64,000 bases of DNA from NCBI GenBank assembly GCA_907165135.1, contig OU015568.1:12090001-12154000 (forward strand). Direction: 5' to 3'. Each line of letters begins with the position of its first letter. The stretch's first letter is position 1. Source of the DNA: Oikopleura dioica. Taxonomy: Eukaryota; Animalia; Chordata. Below are positions 4,405 through 40,300 of the stretch, in pieces. The position numbers were made by a program, and so were the translations under genes. The notes below the pieces were generated by a model. It worked only from the letters and a program-made list of their open reading frames with translations. It searched no databases and was not told where the DNA came from.

Positions 4405-5742
4405 ATGGAATTTCATTACGACGCCGACTATCAATATCAGGTAATTTGAAATTTAATTTTACACCAGGCGGAGAGAGAGAGGTAGAGCTAAATTAATTTT
4501 GTATAATATGATCACTTTGATAACTTGATAAGATAGAGAAGAATGAGATTATTTTCAGGCAGAGATACAGAATGCAGCTATTTGGCCCTCGCAGCTGATT
4601 TACAGACCACAAGACGAGTCCTCTGCACTACAGGTTTGATAAAAAGGCTTTTCGAAAGTGGAGCAAGAATTAAGATTCCCGGACTGAATGAAATTGACCC
4701 TCGGAGTGATCAGAGTTTCTGCTCGACAGCTTCATCAAATTCTACTTCAAGTCGAGAGAATCTTGCGCTTGAGCGTCGAAAACAACGAAGAATAAGGTAT
4801 GAAAGCGTCGATATAAAATCTAAATTGCCGCCTAAGATGACTGAAAGTCCATCATTTATGGGCTTGCTAGTCTGAATTCGCCTTTCTCTTATTTCGTATT
4901 CGTAGAACGACATTTTCAACCGCTCAGCTGAGAGAATTGGAAAGAGTATTTCACGAGACGCACTATCCAGACATCTACACAAGAGAAGATTTAGCCAGCA
5001 GAATTGATCTAACTGAAGCTCGAGTTCAAGGTATGATTTAAAAAATGAAGGAGTAAAAAGAAAAGGGTTAAGTTTGGTTTCAAAACCGCCGCGCAAAGTT
5101 CCGGAAGCAGGAGAAACTTTCAAAAGCGAAATCGCCCAGCGAAAAAACAGGCGGCGGTGCGTTGATGAGCGAAGCTGGCGCCGCGGGCGATGCCGCTGCC
5201 GCTACAGGGGCACTCGCCGGAAGCGGTGCGAGTGCCGCCTCGAGTGATGCCCAAGTCAAGCTCAGGTCAGTGCGAGCTAATTGAGATTGATTGCTTCGGC
5301 AAAACGCGTGAGAGCGTAATTGGGTTAGCATTGGCGGAGCAAGGCTTTTGTTAATATTTCAAGTCCCGTCGAGAGTATTGTTTTTAACTTGCGATATTCA
5401 GTCCGAAAACGCCAAAGTCATCATCGCCAAAGACTGAAGCTTCAACGATTCCAACTCCTCCCACAGCTGGTATTTTTATTTTTCCATTTCAGCTTCGCCA
5501 TTTTCAGATCATGTCTCATTCGCCTCTCCCTACAGCATCTACTCATCCTACGATCCGTTTTCCATGACTTCAGCTGCTTATGGAACTTCTAGACATCTTT
5601 ACGAAGAGCATATGCGCCAAGTAAAATGATCATTTTATCATTTGTGATTCAATACTTTTAGTATTCGTCACCATCTTCTCTAAAAACTGAGCTTCCACCT
5701 GATCTACCCGTTCAAAGTCCTGTCTATCGTGATGAAAATTGA
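4405..5742 (+). CDS. PHOX2: Paired-class (Q50) homeobox transcription factor, Phox2 ortholog, multi-exon
   Basis: Spliced homeodomain [61 protein letters not shown] (introns 4797-4905 and 5031-5072) closely matches PHOX2A/B. Stop 5740-5742; AATAAA near 5777. Confidence 0.92.
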
Positions 5743-5992
5743 GTAGCAAAAGTGTTTAATGTTCTATTTTATTGTAAATAAAAATTTCTTAAAAATTATT
5801 CGTTAACAATAAGCTAAACATAAGTAACGTTTTTCAAAGTTTTCAAATAAAACAAACAATTGACCGCCTATGAGTCGAGCAAGTTATACGACTTTGTGTC
5901 TTTTTACGATCAACTGGCCATGACGGGCGGCTAAAATAACGGTGAATCATTTATGAAAGAATTGTGTATTTTTCAAAACGAGTCAGAAAAAA

Positions 5993-7507: not shown

Positions 7508-10240
7508 TTACAAAATTATACAGCAGGAATCTTCAGAATTAGCTTCAGGGTTTTTCTGAAGTTCATTTCGAGCTCTATCTTCCTTTTTGTGATACAATTT
7601 CAAAATATACATGGTCAGGAGCACCAAAATGACCGATACGATGACAGATGCAAATGCTGGGGCCCAGGATAATGGCTAAATAAAACGTCAAGTTTGCTGT
7701 TCTTGTGTTAAAAATACCTCTGAGCATCCGATTTTGACCCCGTTCAGAGCTTTTACAAGGTCATTCGATTTCGTGCAATCATTGTTGTCCAAAAACGTGC
7801 AGGTTTTCGGAAGAGTTAGAAATTTTCCTTCCATACAATTGTACGAAACACTCTTCTCTTCCTTGGTCATTTTTTCAAGGTAGACTGGCTCGTAGTATTT
7901 TGCCTTGTAAGCATCAATCTGAGGCCAACCTTGAATAGTCGAATTCGGATGTTTCAAGTGAACGGCAAGGACGAACAAGAGTTCTTGTTCATCGAAAAAA
8001 GCTTTGCTCATGTTGGTTTTCAACATCACATTTATTCAAAACAAACATATGTTAAATGTCTCAATCCATTCCTTATCACGTCATATCCGTCTTTTTCCCG
8101 CGGTTCCTCTTGCCACCCTTCTTTTTGCCAGGCATTGATGTACCAAGATTCAAAAAGGACCGGATAATCGGCATTAATCTCGTAGTGAGGGTATGAGTAA
8201 AGCAAGCCAGAGGGCGTCACAGCAACGACTCTGTATTGACCAGGACAAGTTTCTGATTTTCTCAAAATTTCTTGCAGTCCATCGAATCGGTAAATATCGA
8301 CGAGAGCCTGAGTCGTCAGACAGCTTTTCTGAAAAAATGATGTTTTCTTTTTCTACAGAACTTACATAATCTTCCCAGCATTCCTTCATTGTTGCTTTTC
8401 CACAGTTTACGTTCAAATTGATATATTCGTCCCCCACATCAAACGCATCGAGCATCTCATCTCTTGACTCGAACTCATTGAATCCATCACTGAATCTAAG
8501 TTCCTCGCCTCCGGGTATTTTCTCGACCGCATCCATGAGGAGAACTGGTGAGTTTTTCTCTCCGAAGCAGACTTTTTGATCCATAATCAAACTGCACTCT
8601 GATTCCTCAATGTTAAAAAGAGGATCGGCGCCCGATTCATAAAGTTGTGCCCACTCATCTAATACAGCTTTTTCGCCCTCATGATACTTTACAACCATGA
8701 GTAGAAAACTAGCAGCTGAGTTAACTTTGAATATCTCGTAGTCATCGTTCGATTTAGTGTCTTCAGATCCCTCAGATATCATTTCTTCAACGTCCTTCGC
8801 AAAATCTGAAGAGTCCCAATTTTCATAGAAAAAATCCATGTCATCGTATGATAAACTTCCGCAATTATCTGTCTCCTCTGTTTTATTCTTTAATTTCTCT
8901 TCGTATTGCGGTGTGAGAGTCTTTGGATGGTAAACGAAATTGCCAAAGGAGTCCAGGAAGAAGATTTCTGATTTGAATTTCGAGTCAAAAATGCCCTTGA
9001 ACAGTGGATTCTTCAATCTTGGGCCTCTAGTCAAGATATCGATGTCCAGCCCTATGATACCCGTTTCCATCAATCGAGAGACTGTATTTATTTCCCCGAA
9101 TCTAAATGCATCGTTGTATTGAAGACCGAGCACCGAGGTGCTGTTTTCTTCACTCGGCTTCTTTGTCAATTTACTGAATTTGAGATCCCACAAAGTCGCG
9201 TTCAGAGAATTAAACTCTTCTAGCGTCTCCTTGAAGCTCCAATCTTCTCCTAAACGAAGATCATCGTCTTCGCAGGTTAAACAAGCAGCTGAGCCATCGC
9301 AGGTTTCAATTTCTTCCGTAAAGTTGCACTTGTGAAGATCTTCCAAAACTTCGAAAATTCTCGTCCCCTCGAACCCGCTAAAGCTCTTTTCTTTGCAGTC
9401 TTCTCTGAACTGAACTTTTTTGTTTCTTCCTTCTTGGGCGTCAAGGAACCACGGTCGAATTCGGGGGTCATAAGCATTGCACGAAGTGGGAGTAGACTCA
9501 CAGGGGTAGACGTAGTGATAACCGTCGAATGTGCCAAAATATATTCCTTTTAAAGCATCACCAATTGTTGCAGAAGCATTTTCAAATGCATCGCGAATAG
9601 GAGATATTAAGGTTTCGTCATCACAACTGAAATAAGGATCGAACTTTTTGAGACGGAAAAATCTGCATCTACGCTTTTGGATCCCTTCCTGTACGTAGGA
9701 ATGTACGAATTAAACTGGTCAAAGGTCCGTGGCGAATTTGGCGAAACTAGTTCACACAAAAGCTCTCTTTCCGGAAGAATCGCTTCACGGCCATTTTTAA
9801 AATCAAGAGCGCCAGAATTCGAATCTGGATCAACTTCGAAGTTTTGCCTTTGATTTCCGCTAATTGAGCAGGACGACTGCCACTGTACTTTTACTTGCTT
9901 ACAGTTACCCGTAGGCGTCCGCTCAAATGCTTTCACCACGTCGTCGAGCGCGTCGTAAACTTTCATAAAATTTCTTTCGACGTCATCTTTTATTTGTTCG
10001 ACGATTCTTTTTGAATCCACTGGTTTCTTTGAACCTTCATTTCTTTACGCGTTTTTAAAAAGTGCTTTTTTACTCAATTGTTCTTGAAGAAAAAAAACGA
10101 GTCCTGAACTGCTCAGCAAAATTCGTTGGAAACTGTTTTTCAATTATCTTTCTACAAGTCTCTAATCTTGAATCCGACATTTTCATCGATTAAATTCAAA
10201 AAATAAAGAAGATGGACAGGAGTAGTGATTGAATTCGCGG
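7508..10240 (-). CDS. Cache-domain (alpha2delta/CACHD1-like) single-pass membrane protein; 5' end approximate
   Basis: The frame upstream of ORF 8174..9346 reads IYFGTFDGYHYVYP...AYDPRIRPWF, a Cache-type motif; second Cache-like segment FFLDSFGNFVYHP. C-terminal TM, then tail ending SCCIIL-stop at 7508-7510. Confidence 0.72.
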
Positions 10241-14407: not shown

Positions 14408-17400
14408 ATGAAGTCGAAAAGGCTGCTATATTTCTTTTTTCTTGTAGAGATTACAGAAGCACTGGACGAATGTAATGACCCAGCTCTCAATGGATGTAAT
14501 GATCGTGCTCCACATTTTTTAATTTCTTAGTGAGATGTTCTCTTTTAGTATATTTTCTCTTAAAATTTAGCAAATAAGAGCATGTCAAAAGACGGATTTT
14601 CCTGGCAATTCATGCACAGAAAATGATGACACTGTGCCACTTGATTATACCTGCACTTGTGATGAAGTTTCTTTTACCGGTACTGGCTCGATTTTTTGTA
14701 CAGATGTTGATGAGTGTAATCGCTTTCCGTATCCGTGTGGTGACGCAAGTTGTTTTAACACTCTTGGTTCTTACGAATGTGAATGTAGTAATCCTGATAG
14801 AAATGCGCTTATTGGAACATCACCATGGCAGGAGTGTATAAGCATGTGTGAGACAGGAATCCACTACTGCAGTCACGCTGGATGCAACTGTGTTCACGAT
14901 ATTAACGGTCTCACGTTTTCCTGTAATTCTGGATACGAGCTATCTGGTACTTATGATTGCGAAGATATTGATGAATGTCAGACGGGAGATCATGATTGCG
15001 GAAACGATCCTGGCATGACCTGTTATAATAATGTGGGCAGTTTCGATTGCATGTGCGACGGTGGATATGACTACACCGCTAATCCTACGCCAACCTGCAC
15101 TGATCAGAACGAGTGCACCCTTGGAACACATCAGTGCTGCGAAATCGGCTGCGATTGCAACAATATCAGCGGAGGATACACTTGTTCCTGTCAAGCTGGT
15201 TTTGAAACAGACAACACTCTCTACGGATGCAAGGATGTTGATGAATGTGCGACCGGAGTTCATGACTGTGGAACCGATCCTGGAATGAATTGCGTCAATA
15301 ATGTCGGCTCTTTCGATTGCATTTGCGATGAAGAATACAGTAATGCCTACAGTTTTCAAACCGGAAAAACTTGTGTCAACGTTGATGAATGCACTCTTAA
15401 TACTCACAACTGCTGCACTCATGCGGGTTGTTCCGGATGTACTGATACAGATCCGGGATTCACTTGTGCATGTGATGCTGGTTACCAAGGAGACGGAACT
15501 TCTTGCGCTGAAATCGACGAATGTGCGACCGGAGCTCATAACTGCGGAACGGATCCTGGTATGAATTGTGTAAATAATGACGGATCCTTCGATTGTATTT
15601 GCGATGAAGAATACAGTAATGCCTACAGTTTTGTAACCGGAAAAACTTGCGTCAACGTTGATGAATGCACTCTTAATACTCACAACTGCTGCACTCATGC
15701 AGGTTGTTCTGGGTGTACTGATACAGATCCTGGATTTACTTGTGCATGTGATGTTGGTTACCAAGGAGACGGAACTTCTTGCGCTGAAATCGACGAATGT
15801 GCGACCGGAGCTCATAACTGCGGAACGGATCCTGGTATGAATTGTGTAAATAATGACGGATCCTTCGATTGTATTTGCGATGAAGAATACAGTAATGCCT
15901 ACAGTTTTGTAACCGGAAAAACTTGCGTCAACGTTGATGAATGCACTCTTAATACTCACAACTGCTGCACTCATGCAGGTTGTTCTGGGTGTACTGATAC
16001 AGATCCTGGATTTACTTGTGCATGTGATGTTGGTTACCAAGGAGACGGAACTTCTTGCGCTGAAATCGACGAATGTGCGACCGGAGCACATAATTGCGGA
16101 ACGGATCCTGGTATGAATTGTGTCAACAATGACGGATCTTTCGACTGCATTTGCGATGAAGAATATAGTAATGCCTACAGTTTTGTAACCGGAAAAACTT
16201 GTGTCAACGTTGATGAATGCACTCTCAATACTCACAACTGCTGCACTCATGCGGGTTGTTCCGGATGTACTGATACAGATCCGGGATTTACTTGTGCATG
16301 TGATGTTGGTTATCGAGGAGACGGGACCTCTTGCGTTGACATCGACGAGTGTGATGAAGATACAGTAGCTAATCTCTGCGGTGCTGATTCGCTTCTTTCC
16401 TGCATAAATAATATTGGCTCTTATGACTGTAGCTGTCTCGACGGCTATGATATGGTCTTCGATAGTGGCCTCGGTGAAGAAACGTGTGTTCAAGTCGACG
16501 AATGCGTCGATGACAATCTTCACGACTGCGTCACCGGCTTTACGGGAATCTGCACTGATAAGGATCCTAATGTTGATGGTATAAAATTTGAGTGTGGATG
16601 CATTGAAGGTTTTTATGGAAGTGGTTTCGCCAATGGACAGGGTTGCATTCAGGAGCTCGACGAGTGTACAATGGGAACCCACAATTGTGCTGCTGATGCT
16701 GATTGCTTCGACACACAGGCTGCCTTTATTTGTACATGTCACCCTGGTTTTACTGATGATAATCTTGACGGAACAAGTTGCACGAATATTAATGAATGTA
16801 CAGATGGAACTCACAATTGTGCACCTGATGTAGATGGCGGCGTTTGCACTGACAACCCAGGAAGCTTCGAATGCTCTTGTGACAACTCAATTGCTTATGG
16901 AGATGGACTCGCTGCTGGAACTGGGTGTACACTCAAAGTTGACGAATGCGCTGATAACACTCATACTTGCGACGCCAATGCTGCCTGTACGGACACCCAG
17001 GAAGCGTACACATGCACTTGCAACGCTGGATATGACGGTCCTGGATTCATTTGTTACCAAGTCGACGAATGCGCAGAAAAAGGACTTGATATCTTGGGCA
17101 CTGCTGGTGTTCTTGTTGGCACAGAAACCAACTATGCTGATTTCGTTGCCCAGCTTGATACGATGTCAGGAATGGTCAACGGAGTCGTAGGTTCATTCCA
17201 TGGAGCACTTGAAGATCAATTCAATATTGAATCAACATTCACTATTGGAAATACAGGCGGTGCCGAGAAAGTTCTCTTCAGCTTGACTGGTGCGACCAAC
17301 CAGTTTATTCCAGATCTACCAGTCGACACCAGAGACTATTTTATGAGCTTTGAAGTCGTCCAAGACGCCTGCTCCGATCCTGCACAAGATGCGTCGAGTA

Positions 17401-18689
17401 CTTGCACTCTGACCGTAGCTTATGAGACATTCTTGGGTGGATCAGAAAAGAGCGCAACGATACCGTACACTCTCAATAATACTTGTACGGACTATACTGT
17501 GGCGGACGGATGTCCAATGTCAGTCATGATTTTGATCAATCGCCAGGGCATAGCTATTAATGGTACCGTTACTTATTCCATGGTTGTTGATTTGATCACT
17601 CCTGACGGAAACGTCGCCTCAACTGCTTTTGTCGACAATAACGACCACAGAATGACCGAGTTCCGATTCGTCAGAGAAGGTGATTCAGCCGCGCTTATCA
17701 GTTCTTTCTATATTAATCAAGCTGGGTAAGACACATTTTGCTTCCTATTTGTGAAATTTTCCTAGATCTGAAACCAACAACTGCGATGATGACGGTGGAA
17801 TCTGCACAGATACAATAGGCTCTTTTACATGTGATTGTGATCTCAGCACACATTTTGACAACAACAGTGACGAGCCCGGAACCGACTGTGTTGGCCTTGT
17901 CGACGAATGTACTGTTGGTGGACATGATTGCCACCCGACCGGTGGAGTGTGCACCGATTTGGACGATGGTTGGTCCTGCACCTGCGCCACGACACACTTC
18001 GATCTTAATCCTGATGATCCTGGAAAACAGTGTGATCAATTACTACCTTGCGATGCTCGACTTATTGGCGACGTTTTTGATGATTCCGCCCTCAGTCCAC
18101 GGGGCTTTTGGGATTGCAAGTAAATAGAAGTGTAAAGTAAGTCAGCCTTATGTAAAATTTATAGCCGAGGAAGCAAGAAAACAACTTGTAATTATATCTG
18201 CCCTGTTTCTGAAGCAGTCGGTGTTACAGCTTCATGCAAGCACAAAAGCGGGTTGTGGAGAGATCCTACTCGTCCATTGACCTGTAATTTGCCACCAACA
18301 TGCGATCTTGCTGCTCTTGAGACTGAAATCACCGATTTCTTGGGCCGCATCGGATCAAGTCAGTGCTAAATTGATTCAACACAATCTCATGTTTTAAGCT
18401 TATGTTTTCAACGAAAACGACTGGCAGATTGATGGACTTCAGGAGGACAATTTCCTTAGAGGAAGATGGAATTGTGGAAATTCCTTCTTTACCAAGAAGA
18501 TTCAATTCAGCGTTAGAACCAATTTATAAGTGCCACTTCTTTATAAGTATTTAGTGCAACCGAAAAGATGGAGGTACTCGAGCTGTATGGAAATTCAAGG
18601 GTGATCCGAGTGATCATCCAGACGTCTGTCAAGGAATCTTCCGAAGCGAAGGCCTTGAAGTTCGATCGAAATACGTCAAAAAAGCTTGA
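14408..18689 (+). CDS. Secreted calcium-binding EGF-repeat matrix protein (fibrillin/oikosin-like) with non-EGF insert and sushi-like C-terminus
   Basis: Signal peptide MKSKRLLYFFFLVEITEA at 14408; ORF 14634..17729 is mostly cbEGF (D-I/V-D-E-C...N..GSF.C.C); further EGF and Cys-rich exons to the stop at 18687-18689. Confidence 0.88.
15244..16347 (+). repeat. Coding tandem repeat, 276 bp (92 aa, two EGF modules) x about 4
   Basis: Near-identical units; shadow ORFs start at 15658 and 15934, exactly 276 bp apart. Confidence 0.93.
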
Positions 18690-31028: not shown

Positions 31029-34000
31029 ATGGGCTCAAAGCCCTCAAAATCAGTAGGTCCGCTTGAACACTTCAACATAGCCGAGATTCAAGCAATCGAG
31101 GACGAAAATGAATCTGCTCGAGCCAAACAGGTACGAAATTATCTTTGTCAATGATTTTCATCAGTTTAATAAGCTTTTGGTAATCAGACAAAGGAACCTC
31201 AGGCCAGAGTTCCAAAACACGCGTGCGTGCGTGCGCACGCGTGCGCGTGTTTGCGTGCGTGCGCACGCGCACGCACGCGCACTCGGATTTTGTGATTTGC
31301 TGCGCACGCGCACGCACGCGCACGCGAAGATTAAGATTGCGCACGCGTGCTTGATCGTGCGCGTGCGAAAAAAATTTTAAAAATCTTTTTTTATCTCTAG
31401 AATATTTATTTTTTTCTCCCCTGAGGCGTGTTTACATCGATTTGTGGAGACTTGAAGCATATTCGTGTCTCTAGAATTCAATTCTAGCTGTTTTTAATTG
31501 TGCTGATAGAGTCATTTTAAAATGGACACTCCTTGTTCATCATCAAAGAGAGCTCGATTGGACCGAGAAGAGATAAGAGATGCAAAACTTGAAAAGCTTG
31601 TCAAAGATTTTCAGGAACGCGTTTTTTTTGGTTAATTTTTTGGGATCCCCAATAAAAGCAAACTATATTTTTTTTTAAGTAATTTCAATTGGGGGCCCCA
31701 AAAATCTTTTTATTTTTAATCGTTGAATTGAGAACCCCAAAAATTACAAACACTTTTGTCAGGCGGACGGATTTCTTATCTCCGGATTCGAATATGAGCC
31801 TGCTGCCAAAGACGGATATTTTTACTGCATCGGAAAACGATGTGCTATTGGAAAAGTAAAAGCCTTACGCAACGGAAATGATCCAGTCACAAAATGGACG
31901 AAATCATCAATTGATCGTCATATTACCTCATGTCACAAGCCAGAAGCAACGAACCAACCAGATATACTGACTGCATTGAAAAATCCGAAAAAAGAACTTG
32001 ACCACTCGCGCGACGAAAAAAACCGAGTAGCTCAGCAAGTGACGTATCTATGTTCGGATTTGTATATGCCCCTGAGCAGCGTTGAAAAGTAAGAGAATTT
32101 TCTTTGGGTCCCCCAAATTGGGGGCCCCAATTTTTTTTTCAGGATAATTAATTGGGGGCCCCAATAATGATTATTTTCAGGGATCGCTTTAGAGAAGTAT
32201 GCCGCACGTTTTACGAACTTGGAGCGCAGAAAAAAAACGTCGAATCTCTTCTCGTGTCAACTTATTTCCTGGAAAAACAACTTGAATTTTCGGCGTGTGA
32301 GATTACGTCGAAAATTGCGTCAAAAATGGACTATCTTGTTGAAAAAGGTCTTATTCATGCTGAAATCGATGCTAAATGTGTTGGCGACAAGACAAAGGAA
32401 ACACAAGAATCAGCTCATGGAGTACTCCTTGGTAATTCAGATATTTGGGAATCCCAATAATTTTTTTAGGATTCTTACGCCAAGATGGTTCCAGAATATA
32501 TTATTTGAGCGCGTTCGATGCGTTGGATATAAAAGCTAACAAAGATTACAGCGAAGTGATAGCTGGTAACTTAAAATAACATTATTTTTTGGGACTCCCA
32601 AATTGGGAGCCCCAATTTTTGGGACTCCCAAATTGGGGGCCCCAATTTTTGGGAACCCCAAATTGGGAGCCCCAAGTTTTCCGGAGCACGACTAACATAA
32701 ATATTGTTAAGCTCATGCTAGAAAGACTCTTCAAAAATATGGCATTCCGGAGGAGCAAGTCGAACTTATACCACTGAGCACAGATGCTGGTGAGGTCAAG
32801 GTTGGAAAGCTCATCTCGGATTTATCGTGCATTTGTATTTCGCATACATACAATCGTCTTGCGGAACATTATGTCGAATACGCACAGAAGTATTTCAATT
32901 TGGATACAAGATACGAAATAACATTAAAAAATTCGCGGAATCATCCGAAAAGCGATGTTCGAAAGAAGTTGCCGCTATCCACCCTCCAGAATGCCTTCGA
33001 AGTCTCTCTGATTATTTCTATGGACGACCGCTTAATCAGCAAGACAAAATTCTGTACGAATCGATCGATTACAAATCAAGAAAACATAAAACGTATCCAA
33101 TTCTTCATGTAAAATAATTAACATCTATTGGGTCTCCCAATATTGGGAGACCCATTTTTTTTTGTAAGCTTCATATTTGGGGCCCCAAAATAAAACGTAT
33201 TTCTAGCGAACATCGGCCATCAGATGGGAGAAAAATCTCTATAATCTAAATGCAATGTTGGTATGGGAATCTACTGTCAGAGAATTCTCGTTGCCTCATC
33301 ATCCCTATAACTATCTTTTGCCTTCGCCATTGCCAAGCTTCAATTACATAAGAGCCAAACGACTTATCGGAAACGAAATAATGCGTCTAAATCTTGCTCT
33401 TCAAAAACTTCGTCATCAGTTGTGGACCAAGTTCACTCTTTCTCAATCCTGACAAAGTTCCTAGCATCCTGCGCCGAAGGCATAACAGACACAGATTATC
33501 AGGTAACTTAAAATAACATTATTTGTTGGGACTCCCAAATTGGGAGCCCCAATTTTGGGAGCCCCAAATTGGGGGCCCCAAGTTTTCCGGAGCACGACTA
33601 ACATAAATATTTTTAAGCTCATCGTCGGCAAACTTGCGAGAGGAGCCTATTCCAAACTCTCAGCACTTATGTTTCAAGAATTCTGGCTTGACGGAAAGAG
33701 TATTACGAAAACAGATCCTTGCAGAATCGCCAATGTTAATCTCAGTGGAGAATATCTGTTCCCGCGTCGCCAAAAACTAACCTTCGGATTCTTTACGAAG
33801 CATTTGAATGGGTCAAAAGATGGATTTTTCAAAGAACAAGCAAAATATGTTACAGAAAGATGCAAGGACTTTCAAAAATATGCCCGCGAATACATCACTA
33901 TGATTGACCGAAAAATGCCAGGAGACATCGCGGAGCCTGTGTTTCAGCAGTCTAATGGAAATGATTCCTCTGATGAGGATGATTTATCAAGCAGTCAAAG

Positions 34001-36226
34001 TCAATCATCTTCTCTCTCAACAAGCGTTGAGAATCTCACACTCTCTCCAGTGGAAAGAGAAATGCTCAGGTACAATTAATTTTATTCGACAATAAAAAAA
34101 TTAAATATTGGGACTCCCAAATTGGGGGCCCCAAAGTTAACAATAAAAAAATTAATATTGGGATTCCCAAATTGGGGGCCCCAAAGTTAACAATAAAAAA
34201 ATTAATATTGGGACTCCCAAATTGGGCGCCCCAAATTTGACAATAAAATAATTAAATTTTGGGACTCCCAAATTGGGGGCCCCAAATACAACCTTCAAAA
34301 AAAAATAATTATTGGGAGCCCCAATTAAATGAGATAACTTCTTATCTTTCCAGATATGAAGCCCTGACAACGGAAGAGTATAACCGCACACAGGTGAACA
34401 TCAGAGTGAAGAAGGACGATGTTAACTATGTTTCGATATCAATGAAAGCTTTTTGGAATGACGAGAAAATTGCTTCGGAGTTTCCTCGACTACGAAAAAT
34501 AGCAGTCAAAGTGAGTTTTTAAAATTCTGTTATGATAATTCAAAATCAAAGGTTCTTTCATGCCCGGCAGGGACTCAAGAGCTGGAGAGAAGGTTCGGAG
34601 GAACTTCGGAGTATATAAGAAATCCGAAAAGAAATAGAATCAGCTGTGGACGAGTGCTTGAGCTTGCTCAGTATCAACAATACGAATCTGTTCTAAGTTA
34701 TCTTGATAATTTGCCTTAATTTGAAAAAAAAAATGTCTCTTCTAATTTATAAATAAAGTATATTATTTTTCACAAATTGACTTTCGCACGCGCACGCACG
34801 CGCACGCGAAATTTTGGATTTTGACGCACGCGCACGCACGCGCACGCGAAAAATTTTCGTTTTTTGGAACTCTGCCTCAGGCATAGGAGTATCATTTCTC
34901 GGCGGACACTAGGACACAGGAAGACGATCAGGTCATCGATTTTTGAGGATGTTGCCCTTGAAGACTTGTGTGAAGCGGTAAGACCAGTTGGCACTCGCAT
35001 CAATGCTTATTTTCTCTTCAGTCTGGATTAGAGTGCGATGAGGTCGAAAAAACTGGCCGCGTAAAAGCAAAATGCAAAGAAGAAACTCTCAGAAGACTAA
35101 CAACTCATGAAGCTACTAAAGAAGTTTTTCAGGTAATAAGGCTCGCTAAATTTAATATCTACCAATGTCATTTTTAGAATAAAGAGTCGTTTCAAAAATT
35201 CATGGACAGTAGAATGGGAACAAAAGAAGAAAACCCAGCAGGAGGAGGAGGAATGCTGCTGAACCCAAATTTTAGACTCGATATCACAAGATCAAACTTG
35301 TCGTTTACAAGATCAAACTTAAGCCTTTCATATGTAAGTACAAATGTAAAAATTAGTTAACTAAGGTTTATCTTTGCAGTCAAAGAGCAACACAGAAGTT
35401 GCAGAACAAAGTCATGAATCATCAGAATATAAACGAGCAAATACAATAAACAACCCGCTAAAGCCGTGGAGAGAATATGAAATAATGCCAAGCATAAGAG
35501 ACATGACAAGCGAACACACACTTGACGATTGTAGGAATGGGGTAAAACGAACATTTCTGCCAAATTGGTTCTACTAAAATTTCAGACTGAAATAGTAAAA
35601 TCCCAAAAAAAAGCAAAAGACGAGTATCAAAGATCATGGAACCTATGAAACAAAAACCATTATCCGAAGAGTTTTATACGTAAGTTTATAAATATCTTTT
35701 ATTTTAAAAGATAGTATATCTTTTTACTTGTTACTGATAGTTTTTAGACCAAATTTTGGACGGACTTCAATAGGGCCAATGATGGAGAGTGGCATTTCCA
35801 TCACTCGAACCGACACGAACAACAAGAGTCATTCTATCCAACGCGGTCGGAGTAGCTACATAGGGCCAGCTGGGCGCAAATCGGTGCTTACGAACCATGT
35901 GACGGGCAGATCAAGTGTGATAACGGATAGGAGTAGAAGACAAAGTATCGCGATAGACGCTCTCAAGGACCGCCGGACAAGCAAGAAAAAGAGAAAATCA
36001 ACGATGGAGCCGAAGACGATCTACTCGCTCGATCAGGACTTTAAAAGCACTCTTTATACGACCATCAGGTATAGAAGTGTAAGTATTTGCTAGCAACTTT
36101 TTATTTAGTCCCGAAAACCGGAAAAAAGTGTCGATCGCATGTCGCGTGAATGAAGAAACACTGATGATGGCTGAGTCCATGACGAAATCTAAAGAAAAGA
36201 AGAAAAAAATATGTCCGTTCTTCTAA
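31029..36226 (+). CDS. Host gene of unknown function interrupted in exon 2 by the hAT insertion
   Basis: Exon 1 31029-31130 (MGSKPSK...), 34 bp intron, exon 2 from 31165. Removing 31205-34882 restores the open frame FNKLLVIRQRNLRHRSIISRR. Further small exons reach a last exon ending KEKKKKICPFF-stop (36224-36226); whether all downstream exons belong to one gene is inferred. Confidence 0.6.
31522..34719 (+). CDS. hAT transposase, 9 exons, about 747 aa if two single-base frameshifts are corrected
   Basis: Exons 31522-31620, 31763-32088, 32181-32431, 32470-32565, 32712-33108, 33207-33502, 33618-34069, 34354-34510, 34552-34719. BED-like finger (YCIGKRC..SIDRHITSCH), LQKYGI..STDAG, CISHTYNRL (CxxH), AIRWE, and dimerisation motif FWNDEKIASEFPRLRKIAVKVLSCPAGTQELERRF. 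Confidence 0.9.
31640..34325. repeat. Dispersed intronic palindromic 13-mer TTGGGnnnCCCAA, about 29 copies in transposase introns 1-7
   Basis: Counted by eye, including degenerate copies: intron 1 x3, intron 2 x3, intron 3 x1, intron 4 x6, intron 5 x3, intron 6 x4, intron 7 x9. None in intron 8. Confidence 0.92.
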
Positions 36227-37336: not shown

Positions 37337-40300
37337 TTAGTAAAGATAATAATAATCAAAAGTTTCGATAGGACAAAGTTCCGTTTCACATGGTTCGCTT
37401 GTATGAATTTTGTAAAAAGTATTCGTGAGTTTCCAGCTTGCGAAGTCACCAACCGGCACTCTCTCTCGTGAACGGGAGGATTGACCACAAGTTGCGCTAA
37501 AAAATGACGAAAAATAACATTCCCTATTTCGAACCTGCATTCGCCCCATTCTGTCCAACTTGAAAAGGCACATTTAGGAATCGGCGGAATCGCCAGCCAC
37601 TCTGCGGCAGTATCTTTGCGGGTCATCGGAACAACTCTGATGGACCCTCTTGCTGACAAGTAAAAATTACCACCAGGGACGAGAATTCGCGTCCATGGAA
37701 TATCCCCAACGTCTTCGATCAACATTTCGAACATCGTCAACTCTTCTTCTCGGGGACCGAATCCTTCCATCCCATACATTGTAAGATGCTTTTTGTAATC
37801 ATCACTGTATCCCATGTAAAATTCGCCCGAATTAGTTGTGAACTTTAACCGAACATTTTGGAAATCAGATGATTCTGGCGTGTCAAAACAAGTGAGGGTA
37901 AGAGTGGAGTCAATATCGTCGTAGAAACGCATTGTGTCAACCATGTCTGTTATACCATTTTGCATACCTAGACGAAAATGTTATCAATAAATCTATAAAA
38001 ATGTGAAAAACCTAGAAAAGCTGTTTCTTTGATTGAATAAAGCATAATGTCAGTGCCACAAAGATCTTTCATTGACGGCTGAGAAGTTTTGACACAATAT
38101 TCTGGCTCAATGTACTCCTTTGTTGTCGTCGTTGTCGAGGTAGTTGTTGTTGTTGATGTTGTGGAAGTGGAAGTAGTGCTGGTAGAAGTAGTCGTAGTTG
38201 TTGTAGATGTTGTTGTTGTGGTACTCGTTGTTGATGTTGTCGTTGTGGTCGTTGTAGTACTTGATGTTGATGTAGTCGATGTTGTAGTTGTCGTTGAGGT
38301 CGTCGATGTCGTAGTTGTTGTGGTTGTGGTGGTGGTTGTAGTTGTCGAGGTAGTTGAAGTAGATGTTGTAGTAGATGTTGTACTTGTCGTAGTTGTAGTC
38401 GTAGTTGTAGTCGTTGTCGTAGGCCAATTTCAATAAGAAGTTGAAAACTTAAAACCAAAAACCCCCCTTATTTTAGCTCATTGGAAAGAGCATGAAAAGT
38501 TATTCCAGAAAAAGTAGTCTTGTATGCTGAGTCATGTCCGATGACGTCACAGACATTGATTGAAGTTCCAAAAGTCCCAAAACTTTCGGACGCTCTCATT
38601 TTTATTCTACTGAAGGAAAATTAGAGCTCGAAGATGAAAAATGATCGTCTTACGCTCCTTTATGCAGGCCTGCAGAAATATATCTTATCAATAATGTAAA
38701 ACTATTTTTTCTAGAGATGTAAAAATTTTTTCGACTCAAATTTTTTTCATTTATGGTTGCCTGCGTAGAGTGGCCTAAGACGGTCAAAACCCTGTATCTA
38801 ATGTTTTTTTCCGAAAAATATTTTAGGAATAAGAGCGTCCGAAAGTTTAGAAAATCTGGGACTTAAGTCATCGATAATGACGTCATAATCTATGACTAAG
38901 TCACTTTACCTAATGTTTTCTAGTGTAACTTTTTATGGGGATTCCAATCAGACAATAAAAAGGGGGGCTTAGGATTTGAAATTTCTACTCCTTATTAAAA
39001 TTGGCCGTAGTCGTAGTTGTAGTTGTGCTTGTGGTGGTCGTTGTTGTTGATGTGGATGTCGTCGTGGAGGTTGTAGTTGTCGGTTCTACAGTTGCTTCTG
39101 TAGTCTCGTTTGTAGGAGAACGTCCAAAATCTTGTGGCTTTGGTGCGAATGCAATCGTTTCATTGGTGCATTCGTCCTCGGAACAAGTTATATTTCGTTT
39201 TCGCTCGCCTTCGCATTCTCCGTCCAGAATGCCACAGATAATGATACAATCTCGCTCCTCTACTGCCTCACAGCTCTCATCGCAATCGGTCGTTTGCCTC
39301 CAATCACTCCATACAGTGTACGCTTGTTGATTGCAAGGCCTTGAGATGGAGTGAAAATCAAGGAATATAACTTACTTACTTTGTTTCCACATCATTTATT
39401 CTATTGCCAGTGCACGTTTGAATACGCTGACTTTCTCCGCCACAACTTGAAGCAGAACATTCCGTCCAATCAGACCAAACACAGTCCTCTCAAAAGACTC
39501 TTTAGTAAACGTAGACTTACTCTAAGTACCGCATAATATCTCGTCCCCATAATTATCTAATGCAATACAGGGCTCGTTGTCTTCCTCAAGCATTCCGTAG
39601 CAGAACCTTCTTCTCTGTCTGAATCCATTTCCACAAACAGCGTCACAAGCATCCCATTCCGTCCAATCTGACTCACATCGAGTCGATTTGAAAGCATGGC
39701 AGTTTGCATCTCTAATGATATTTACTCCCAAAGTAGTTCGCTTTTTCACATTTTCGCGTGAACTGGCTGACCGAGGAACTTTCATCAATTGTGGATAAGA
39801 AAATCCATCAATGAATCTTCTGTGCTTAGCTTCATACTCGATTCTTGCTTCAGATTTACTCGGAAAATCATGAATTTTCCATAAATCTCTACCAACGCAA
39901 GGGCTACTCTCGCGGCAATGCGAACCAATAAGGCGATCCGATTCGTGATCCTGCAGTTCCTGTTAACTAGAATGCTTTCTTGGCTACCTTGATAAGTTTG
40001 AGATTGTAAGGCTCATTGTACAGAACGGCTACGTTTTCTCCATCCTCTGGGTTGCAGCAAATGGTCCACAGAGAGTCATCCGAGGGTTCGATGTTGTGCG
40101 ATATGGAACGATATGTGACTTTACTATCGTTCTCATTCTGAAAAAAATTTTGTTGCTTTATTCTCAACAAGCAAACCTTGTTTCTTTTTAATGTAAGGGC
40201 CCTTCTACGGTGATTAGTCAGCTGGACGACTTTATTGCAAATTGTCGCTTTCCATCGGATTTTTAAATGATATTTCATTCGATATAATTTCTTTTATCCG

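Follow-up and report, generated by a model that had tools for sequence, protein, structure and literature searches.

Two copies of one palindrome-rich intron in a hAT-type transposase gene of Oikopleura dioica, at least one of them apparently in place of an older intron

The DNA considered here is a stretch of 64,000 nucleotides from the chordate Oikopleura dioica (assembly GCA_907165135.1, contig OU015568.1, positions 12,090,001 to 12,154,000 of the forward strand), referred to below as the window. It carries a hAT-type DNA transposon with a transposase gene split by eight introns, and two of these, introns 4 and 6, proved to be near-identical from end to end. Comparison with a related transposase gene from the same species suggests that at least one of the two occupies a position that held an intron before the copy arrived, so that copying between existing introns, and not the gain of two new ones, appears to be the event recorded in this gene. 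The element and the gene within it are laid out as follows.

31205..34874, + strand: hAT-type DNA transposon, 3,670 bp, with 13-bp perfect terminal inverted repeats and an 8-bp target duplication
31197..31204, no strand: left target-site duplication CCTCAGGC, 8 bp, identical to 34875-34882
34875..34882, no strand: right target-site duplication CCTCAGGC, identical to the left copy at 8/8 positions
31218..31370, no strand: left subterminal (CGCACG)n-type arrays, mirroring 34785-34848 in inverted orientation
34785..34848, no strand: right subterminal (CGCACG)n arrays
31522..34719, + strand: transposase gene in nine exon segments, interrupted by eight GT-AG introns

The element was called hAT-type because of its terminal inverted repeats, its 8-bp duplication and its inverted subterminal arrays. 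The terminal inverted repeat, CAGAGTTCCAAAA, is perfect at 13/13 positions and occurs in the 64 kb only at 31205-31217 (+) and 34862-34874 (-); when extended, the two ends match at 17/18 positions. In common with the hAT superfamily, the element has an 8-bp target duplication, short terminal inverted repeats starting with CAGAG and subterminal repeat arrays. That the introns lie inside a mobile element had been proposed in an earlier note on this DNA, and the terminal inverted repeats together with the 8-bp target duplication show this to be so. Neither self-BLAST nor a terminal-repeat search found a second copy of the element in the 64-kb window. The subterminal (CGCACG)n arrays, candidate transposase-binding repeats, are unrelated to the palindromes described below for the introns. 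The transposon itself sits in an intron of a + strand host gene, with the transposase gene in the same orientation as its host, and the upstream exon of the host gene (31029-31130) starts with MGSKPSKS..., which is myristoylation-like.

When exon 5 was used as query in a full HMMER search of 1.84 billion representatives, one match was returned, the O. dioica protein CAG5101471.1 (label P0001; E = 1.9e-5, 40% over 62 residues) of assembly OKI2018_I69, which carries the Pfam domain Dimer_Tnp_hAT (PF05699) at residues 675-729. In tblastn and exon-wise alignments the window exons are collinear with CAG5101471.1 over most of its length, at 23-51% identity, and the last two exons reach 49% and 51% identity to residues 660-736, a segment spanning the dimerisation domain. 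Because of this collinearity with a protein carrying the hAT dimerisation domain, the window gene is assigned by homology as a hAT transposase, which adds a further likeness to the superfamily; its family is distinct from that of CAG5101471.1, and new relative to it, differing both in protein identity (23-51%) and in the ends of the element. The gene is also rich in introns. Other searches added no relatives: an exon-by-exon Pfam scan of the window transposase gave no family at E up to 1, the dimerisation domain being split by intron 8, a word search with exon 7 found no relative, and word searches with CAG5101471.1, whole and with its C-terminal part, found only the protein itself. A GT-AG model leaves three breaks in the reading frame, each of frameshift type: one falls inside an exon, and at two junctions the phases fail to match. 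The exon pieces are otherwise free of stops. The two junction breaks might be absorbed by non-canonical splice sites, and under the GT-AG model the intact frame of an autonomous copy was not found.

The gene of CAG5101471.1 (6001-8678 of a sequence here called L001) served as the outgroup for intron positions, the window exons being projected onto the protein. The hAT element that holds this gene is apparently intact and lies in the Y-specific part of the Okinawa assembly; it is flanked by subterminal inverted repeat arrays of about 100 nt, built from a 22-nt unit, at 5698-5848 and 8790-8893.

The two matching introns and their immediate surroundings are these.

32566..32711, + strand: intron 4, 146 nt, phase 1, six palindromes and an ACTAAC branch-site-like motif
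32586..32680, + strand: 30-nt tandem array in intron 4, 3.2 units with two 13-nt palindromes per unit
32712..32716, + strand: CTCAT, the first five exon bases 3' of intron 4
33503..33617, + strand: intron 6, 115 nt, phase 0, four palindromes
33526..33586, + strand: 29/30-nt tandem array in intron 6, 2.1 units
33618..33622, + strand: CTCAT, the first five exon bases 3' of intron 6

Introns 4 and 6 can be aligned over their full length from GT to AG, with 4 substitutions in 115 shared columns. Their first 22 nt are identical, their last 36 nt contain one mismatch, and the sole difference in length, 31 nt, amounts to one unit of the 30-nt tandem repeat. At the 5' splice site the bounds of both copies deviate by no more than 1 nt, and at the 3' splice site by no more than 5 nt. 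Neither 146 nor 115 is divisible by 3, and retention of either intron would lead to a translation stop within 2-4 codons. When up to three mismatches were allowed, the 5' 22-mer and the 3' 27-mer of these introns each had only two sites in the 64 kb, against 0 expected. Introns 4 and 6 derive from a single sequence by copying. An artefact of assembly, in which a mis-join in repeat-rich DNA doubled one real intron, or a resemblance by chance, is very improbable: tandem and palindromic repeats are indeed hard to assemble, but each copy lies between different exons that are collinear with CAG5101471.1, the 4 substitutions separate one copy from the other, and the end-sequence searches, with two sites where none was expected, exclude chance identity.

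The two introns lie about 0.9 kb apart, and the exon sequence around them does not share their similarity. Identity in the flanks does not exceed background (10/20 positions upstream, 11/20 downstream), except for a G at -1 and for CTCAT at +1 to +5. For a random pair of exon positions in the transposase gene, an adjoining run of at least five matches has P = 0.0015 on one given side and P = 0.003 on either side. The idea that a block of exon and intron was duplicated in tandem (segmental duplication), its exons diverging afterwards, could draw on nothing beyond the shared G and CTCAT; identity in the flanks is at background past 5 nt, and the exons around introns 4 and 6 align to four different regions of CAG5101471.1. 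This explanation is therefore regarded as refuted, with next to no probability left to it. The earlier note had likewise argued against segmental duplication, and most of its description of the pair held up: under the GT-AG model its intron coordinates and its phases of 1 and 0 are correct, as are its counts of six and four palindromes; the shared 5' and 3' ends that it reported are present (22 nt identical, and 36 nt with one mismatch); and the flanking exons are unrelated apart from CTCAT, to which the G at -1 can be added. Identity stops 5 nt into the downstream exon, so that the exon similarity well past 5 bp which the same note would have read as tandem duplication is not seen, and both end sequences, sought throughout the 64-kb window, lie at introns 4 and 6 only.

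The remaining introns of the gene bear on how this pair arose, and are listed here.

31631..31762, + strand: intron 1, 132 nt, 2 palindromes, no counterpart in L001
32089..32180, + strand: intron 2, 92 nt, 3 palindromes
32432..32469, + strand: intron 3, 38 nt, 1 palindrome, no counterpart in L001
33109..33206, + strand: intron 5, 98 nt, one 13-nt palindrome and a perfect 26-nt palindrome
34070..34353, + strand: intron 7, 284 nt, 9 palindromes, with a 50-nt tandem array of 3.9-4.6 units at 34089-34324
34511..34551, + strand: intron 8, 41 nt, no palindrome, unstructured

The 13-nt palindrome TTGGGNNNCCCAA is found in 26 copies in the 64 kb, against 0.08 expected, and all of them are inside introns 1 to 7 of the transposase gene (2, 3, 1, 6, 1, 4 and 9 copies, respectively); the exons, the remainder of the element, the other 60 kb and the 14.7 kb of L001 have none. 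Palindromes as a general trait of introns in the window are ruled out by this distribution. The palindromes come in pairs, each pair forming a longer imperfect palindrome, and in introns 4 and 6 make up the 30-nt tandem unit; in intron 7 the pairs belong to a 50-nt unit, each unit resembling the non-palindromic 5' leader of introns 4 and 6 together with their first palindrome pair. Self-BLAST matched the intron 7 array to 32572-32615 of intron 4 at 88.6% over 44 nt, with the non-palindromic leader included, intron 2 to intron 4 at 94% over 33 nt, and intron 1 to intron 2 at 85% over 41 nt. Similarity among the remaining introns is thus partial and confined to segments, and does not extend to whole introns. 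The perfect 26-nt palindrome of intron 5, at 33129-33154, is a sequence variant that differs from the palindromes of introns 4 and 6. The introns of the transposase gene have exchanged or inherited a common palindromic module, a pattern that extends to seven of the eight and reaches its fullest form in introns 4 and 6.

Comparison with the relative gene revealed which of these positions are likely to be old. The L001 gene has nine GT-AG introns of 40-45 nt, free of the palindromes, and splicing them out reproduces the annotated protein exactly. Window introns 2, 6 and 8 share codon and phase with the L001 introns at codons 147, 499 and 695, respectively, and window intron 5 shares the position and phase of the intron at codon 399 on the acceptor side; four exact position matches among eight and nine introns cannot be chance. 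Intron 4 lies 1 nt from the L001 codon-268 intron when the projection is anchored N-terminally and 10 nt from it when anchored C-terminally. Intron 7 is some 10-15 codons from the L001 intron at codon 635, in an indel-rich region, and the rest are private to one gene or the other (window introns 1 and 3; L001 introns at codons 83, 203 and 310). At site 6 the upstream exon DNA is identical at 13/20 positions between window and L001 and ends AG/GT (exon/intron) in both, and the L001 intron there, 41 nt long, is unrelated in sequence to window intron 6.

Since position and phase at site 6 are shared exactly with the L001 codon-499 intron, an intron at this site appears to predate the split of the two hAT families. 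From the same comparison, at least one of introns 4 and 6 would have overwritten an older intron and at most one of the two positions would be new; with intron 6 at an ancestral position, the pair is therefore not a case of two recent gains. The earlier note had proposed recent intron copying, and its copy relationship stands; a pair of new gains does not, given that site 6 is shared with L001 codon 499. The L001 exon that follows the codon-499 intron starts GCTCAT (7797-7802), and the spliced site-4 junction in the window also reads GCTCAT. Given GCTCAT at the same L001 junction, CTCAT at site 6 may be ancestral exon sequence; because of the one-base offset between the L001 GCTCAT and the window CTCAT, the match may be a chance one.

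Introns 4 and 6 exceed the regular size in this species, being 146 and 115 nt long against 40-45 nt in L001 and a peak of O. dioica intron lengths at 47 bp (PMC4122922). Their predicted RNA folds are also strongly stable, with -61.7 kcal/mol (z = -6.2) for intron 4 and -40.5 kcal/mol (z = -4.5) for intron 6, to which can be added -85.7 kcal/mol (z = -5.5) for intron 7; window intron 8 and the short L001 introns fold at background level (z from -0.6 to +0.25). In the minimum-energy folds of introns 4 and 6 the two intron ends are paired together. The 5' leader and 3' tail are partly complementary (32577-32587 with 32700-32710 in intron 4, and 33507-33513 with 33611-33617 in intron 6), and the single G/T difference near the 3' end alters the predicted terminal stem. 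Without their arrays the two introns would be about 58 nt long, not far from the 47-bp peak, and because the unpaired remainder is of this size the predicted hairpins probably allow such long introns to be spliced in a genome adapted to introns of some 45 nt.

These features raise the possibility of an introner-like mobile intron, a structured element that carries its own splice signals, would insert at many sites across the genome and has hit this gene twice, possibly with a preference for CTCAT as target. Introns longer than usual for the species, a strongly stable predicted structure, partly complementary intron ends and a shared downstream pentamer would all suit such an element, and length, structure, end pairing and shared pentamer are traits of fungal introner-like elements (PMC3609843). 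However, no third copy of either end sequence was found in the 64 kb at 3 mismatches, the palindromes are missing from the other window introns and from the 14.7 kb of L001, no direct repeat or target-site duplication flanks intron 4 or 6, and site 6 apparently held an intron in the ancestor already; an introner is accordingly thought unlikely. Target-site duplications around introns 4 and 6 had been sought at several offsets, TTAA and GCT among them, and none was consistent at both sites. Searches beyond the window were made in collections that hardly sample this organism: the intron 3' end gave zero matches in prokaryote genomes and viral contigs, and the double palindrome gave eight loci in metagenome contigs, all unrelated (14-nt satellites, a plant-like contig and chance sites). 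Two of these metagenome contigs, L003 and L005, hold kilobase-long satellites with a 14-nt unit, TTTTGGGTCTCCCA, that is similar to one half of the intron palindrome; the source organism is unrelated, and the similarity probably arose by chance.

The pair is best read as intron-to-intron copying at positions that already held introns, and looks like a replacement or homogenisation. One way in which this could have occurred is through RNA, an excised intron being reverse-spliced into a transcript of the same gene, by preference at a junction already spliced, reverse-transcribed by the enzyme of a host retroelement and recombined into the gene in place of the older intron. Such a route would account for a copy running precisely from GT to AG between unrelated exons and in different phases, and for the placing of the site-6 copy exactly at an old junction, with the old position kept. 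O. dioica is reported to have both near-identical introns and intron transposition (cited in PMC3443670, Table 1, and in PMC3609843), and the route agrees with suspected reverse-splicing events in one fungus, which fall mostly at sites that held an intron before (PMC3443670, section 6). Yet reverse splicing would be expected to carry no exon bases, and five are shared here (P about 0.002); the module-level similarities among introns 1, 2, 4, 6 and 7 are partial and not whole-intron copies; hAT elements do not encode a reverse transcriptase; and the L001 intron nearest to site 4 is displaced from it by 1-10 nt. The RNA route is accordingly considered the leading alternative to copying at the level of DNA, and less likely than not.

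Breaks and template switches are liable to occur in palindromic arrays, and the introns have no other homology to one another. A DNA-level route seeded by these arrays is favoured because it accounts for the identity over five exon bases and for the partial likeness seen elsewhere among the introns, and we infer this route from sequence comparison, with confidence that falls a little short of even. The five-base exon identity and the patchy similarity of the introns fit a microhomology-guided DNA copy, which the earlier note had offered beside reverse splicing, at least as well. In the proposed sequence of events, most intron positions of the transposase gene would have been inherited from an older hAT ancestor. 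Introns 4 and 6 represent a single structured intron in duplicate, made up of 22 nt on the 5' side, a variable number of 30-nt units predicted to form hairpins, and 36 nt on the 3' side that include the branch-site-like ACTAAC; its copy would have come to lie over at least one short intron already in place. A break or a stalled replication fork in one array would then be repaired from the array of the other intron 0.9 kb away, with synthesis continuing outward past the unique intron ends and resolution at short matches common to the introns and their flanks, namely G/GTAA on the 5' side and the T-rich tract, AG and CTCAT on the 3' side. Later slippage could have changed the number of units from 3 to 2, or the reverse.

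Several observations weigh against copying between existing introns at the level of DNA. Identity sets in right at the 5' splice site and extends through the entire intron, a result that the RNA route gives for free and for which the DNA route needs either consensus ends already in place or selection. The sharing of CTCAT after both introns could be chance. At site 4 the phase is 1 in the window and 2 in the L001 codon-268 intron, and exon 4, with a score of 27, is too poorly conserved to be aligned by itself, so that an intron pre-existing at site 4 is likely and less secure than the one at site 6. The ancestry of all the intron positions is, moreover, drawn from a comparison of two genes with one outgroup. 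A more far-reaching reading, rather doubtful at present, is that a self-propagating intron module built of hairpins took over nearly all introns of the transposase and travels with the transposon, introns 4 and 6 being its latest whole-intron copy.

To our knowledge, the copying of spliceosomal introns is known only from indirect cases. The evidence comes mainly from genes that contain near-identical introns, and few animals, O. dioica among them, have been reported to have such genes. Introns of another appendicularian, Fritillaria borealis, are reportedly non-canonical, derived from miniature transposons and spread genome-wide (Henriet et al. 2019). The resemblance to the present case is that the intron ends are reportedly able to pair, bringing the splice sites together, whereas introns 4 and 6 are GT-AG, lack a target duplication and lie in one gene.

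For O. dioica itself, near-identical introns between unrelated exons have been interpreted as intron transposition, according to PMC3443670, PMC3296678, PMC3609843 and PMC4122922, and the first three of these papers cite the earlier reports of homologous intron pairs to which the earlier note had alluded. The pairs of Denoeud et al. (2010), known here through those citing papers, resemble introns 4 and 6 in being nearly identical introns with unrelated exons, in the same or a closely related organism. The present pair differs from them, as far as the citing papers describe them, in having a hAT transposase as host gene, at least one ancestral position, 2-3 times the usual length, and palindromic arrays common to nearly all introns of the gene.

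In fungi, duplications within the same gene yield introns of ordinary length and structure, and introner-like elements are long, structured and high in copy number, with unrelated genes by the tens to hundreds carrying them (Collemare et al. 2013, PMC3609843). With the former, the case described here shares near-identical introns in one gene without exon duplication (PMC3609843), and with the latter, introns longer than regular ones and with a stable predicted structure (PMC3609843); unlike introner-like elements, the structured introns are confined to one gene within the sequence seen (the window and L001). In these terms, introns 4 and 6 count as a same-gene duplication that has the length and structure of an introner-like element. 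Intron transposition as proposed for Mycosphaerella is similar in that homologous introns lie mostly at positions already holding introns, and dissimilar in that it concerns a different kingdom and that palindromic arrays are not described there (PMC3443670). In the literature consulted, in which the original O. dioica report is represented by papers citing it, no description was found of a transposase setting, of an ancestral position for at least one copy or of a palindromic module limited to the introns of one gene.

Elsewhere in the window, an uninterrupted open reading frame of 1,031 codons with 11 stretches of the calcium-binding epidermal growth factor (EGF) type lies at 14634-17729, an unusually long single exon for a compact genome, and a 624-codon frame antisense to it is probably spurious. 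Long imperfect arrays with 9-nt periodicity (GTTGTNGTN) lie at 38110-38450 and 38990-39080, where reading frames are open on both strands. Domains in the neighbouring reading frames (cbEGF, CUB, SRP68 and M13 peptidase) accord with a compact animal genome. Exact look-ups of two reading frames neighbouring the element, by which an orthologous or empty site was sought, returned no record, and Rfam and transfer RNA scans of the window found nothing.

In summary, structural and comparative analysis of this transposase gene has led from two matching introns to a gene-wide palindromic module and to a copy at a position that appears older than the copy itself, which argues for replacement and against gain. 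The spread of the module through the gene points to a local, possibly DNA-level process. An element of this kind is capable of existing in many copies, and other copies of the family could show the states before and after replacement by sequence comparison. If takeover of the introns by the module is correct, the transposon family would provide a dated replicate series for the stepwise replacement of introns in an animal. As a pattern at a single locus the pair would be a curiosity; as a pattern across the family it would be a tractable record of intron turnover.

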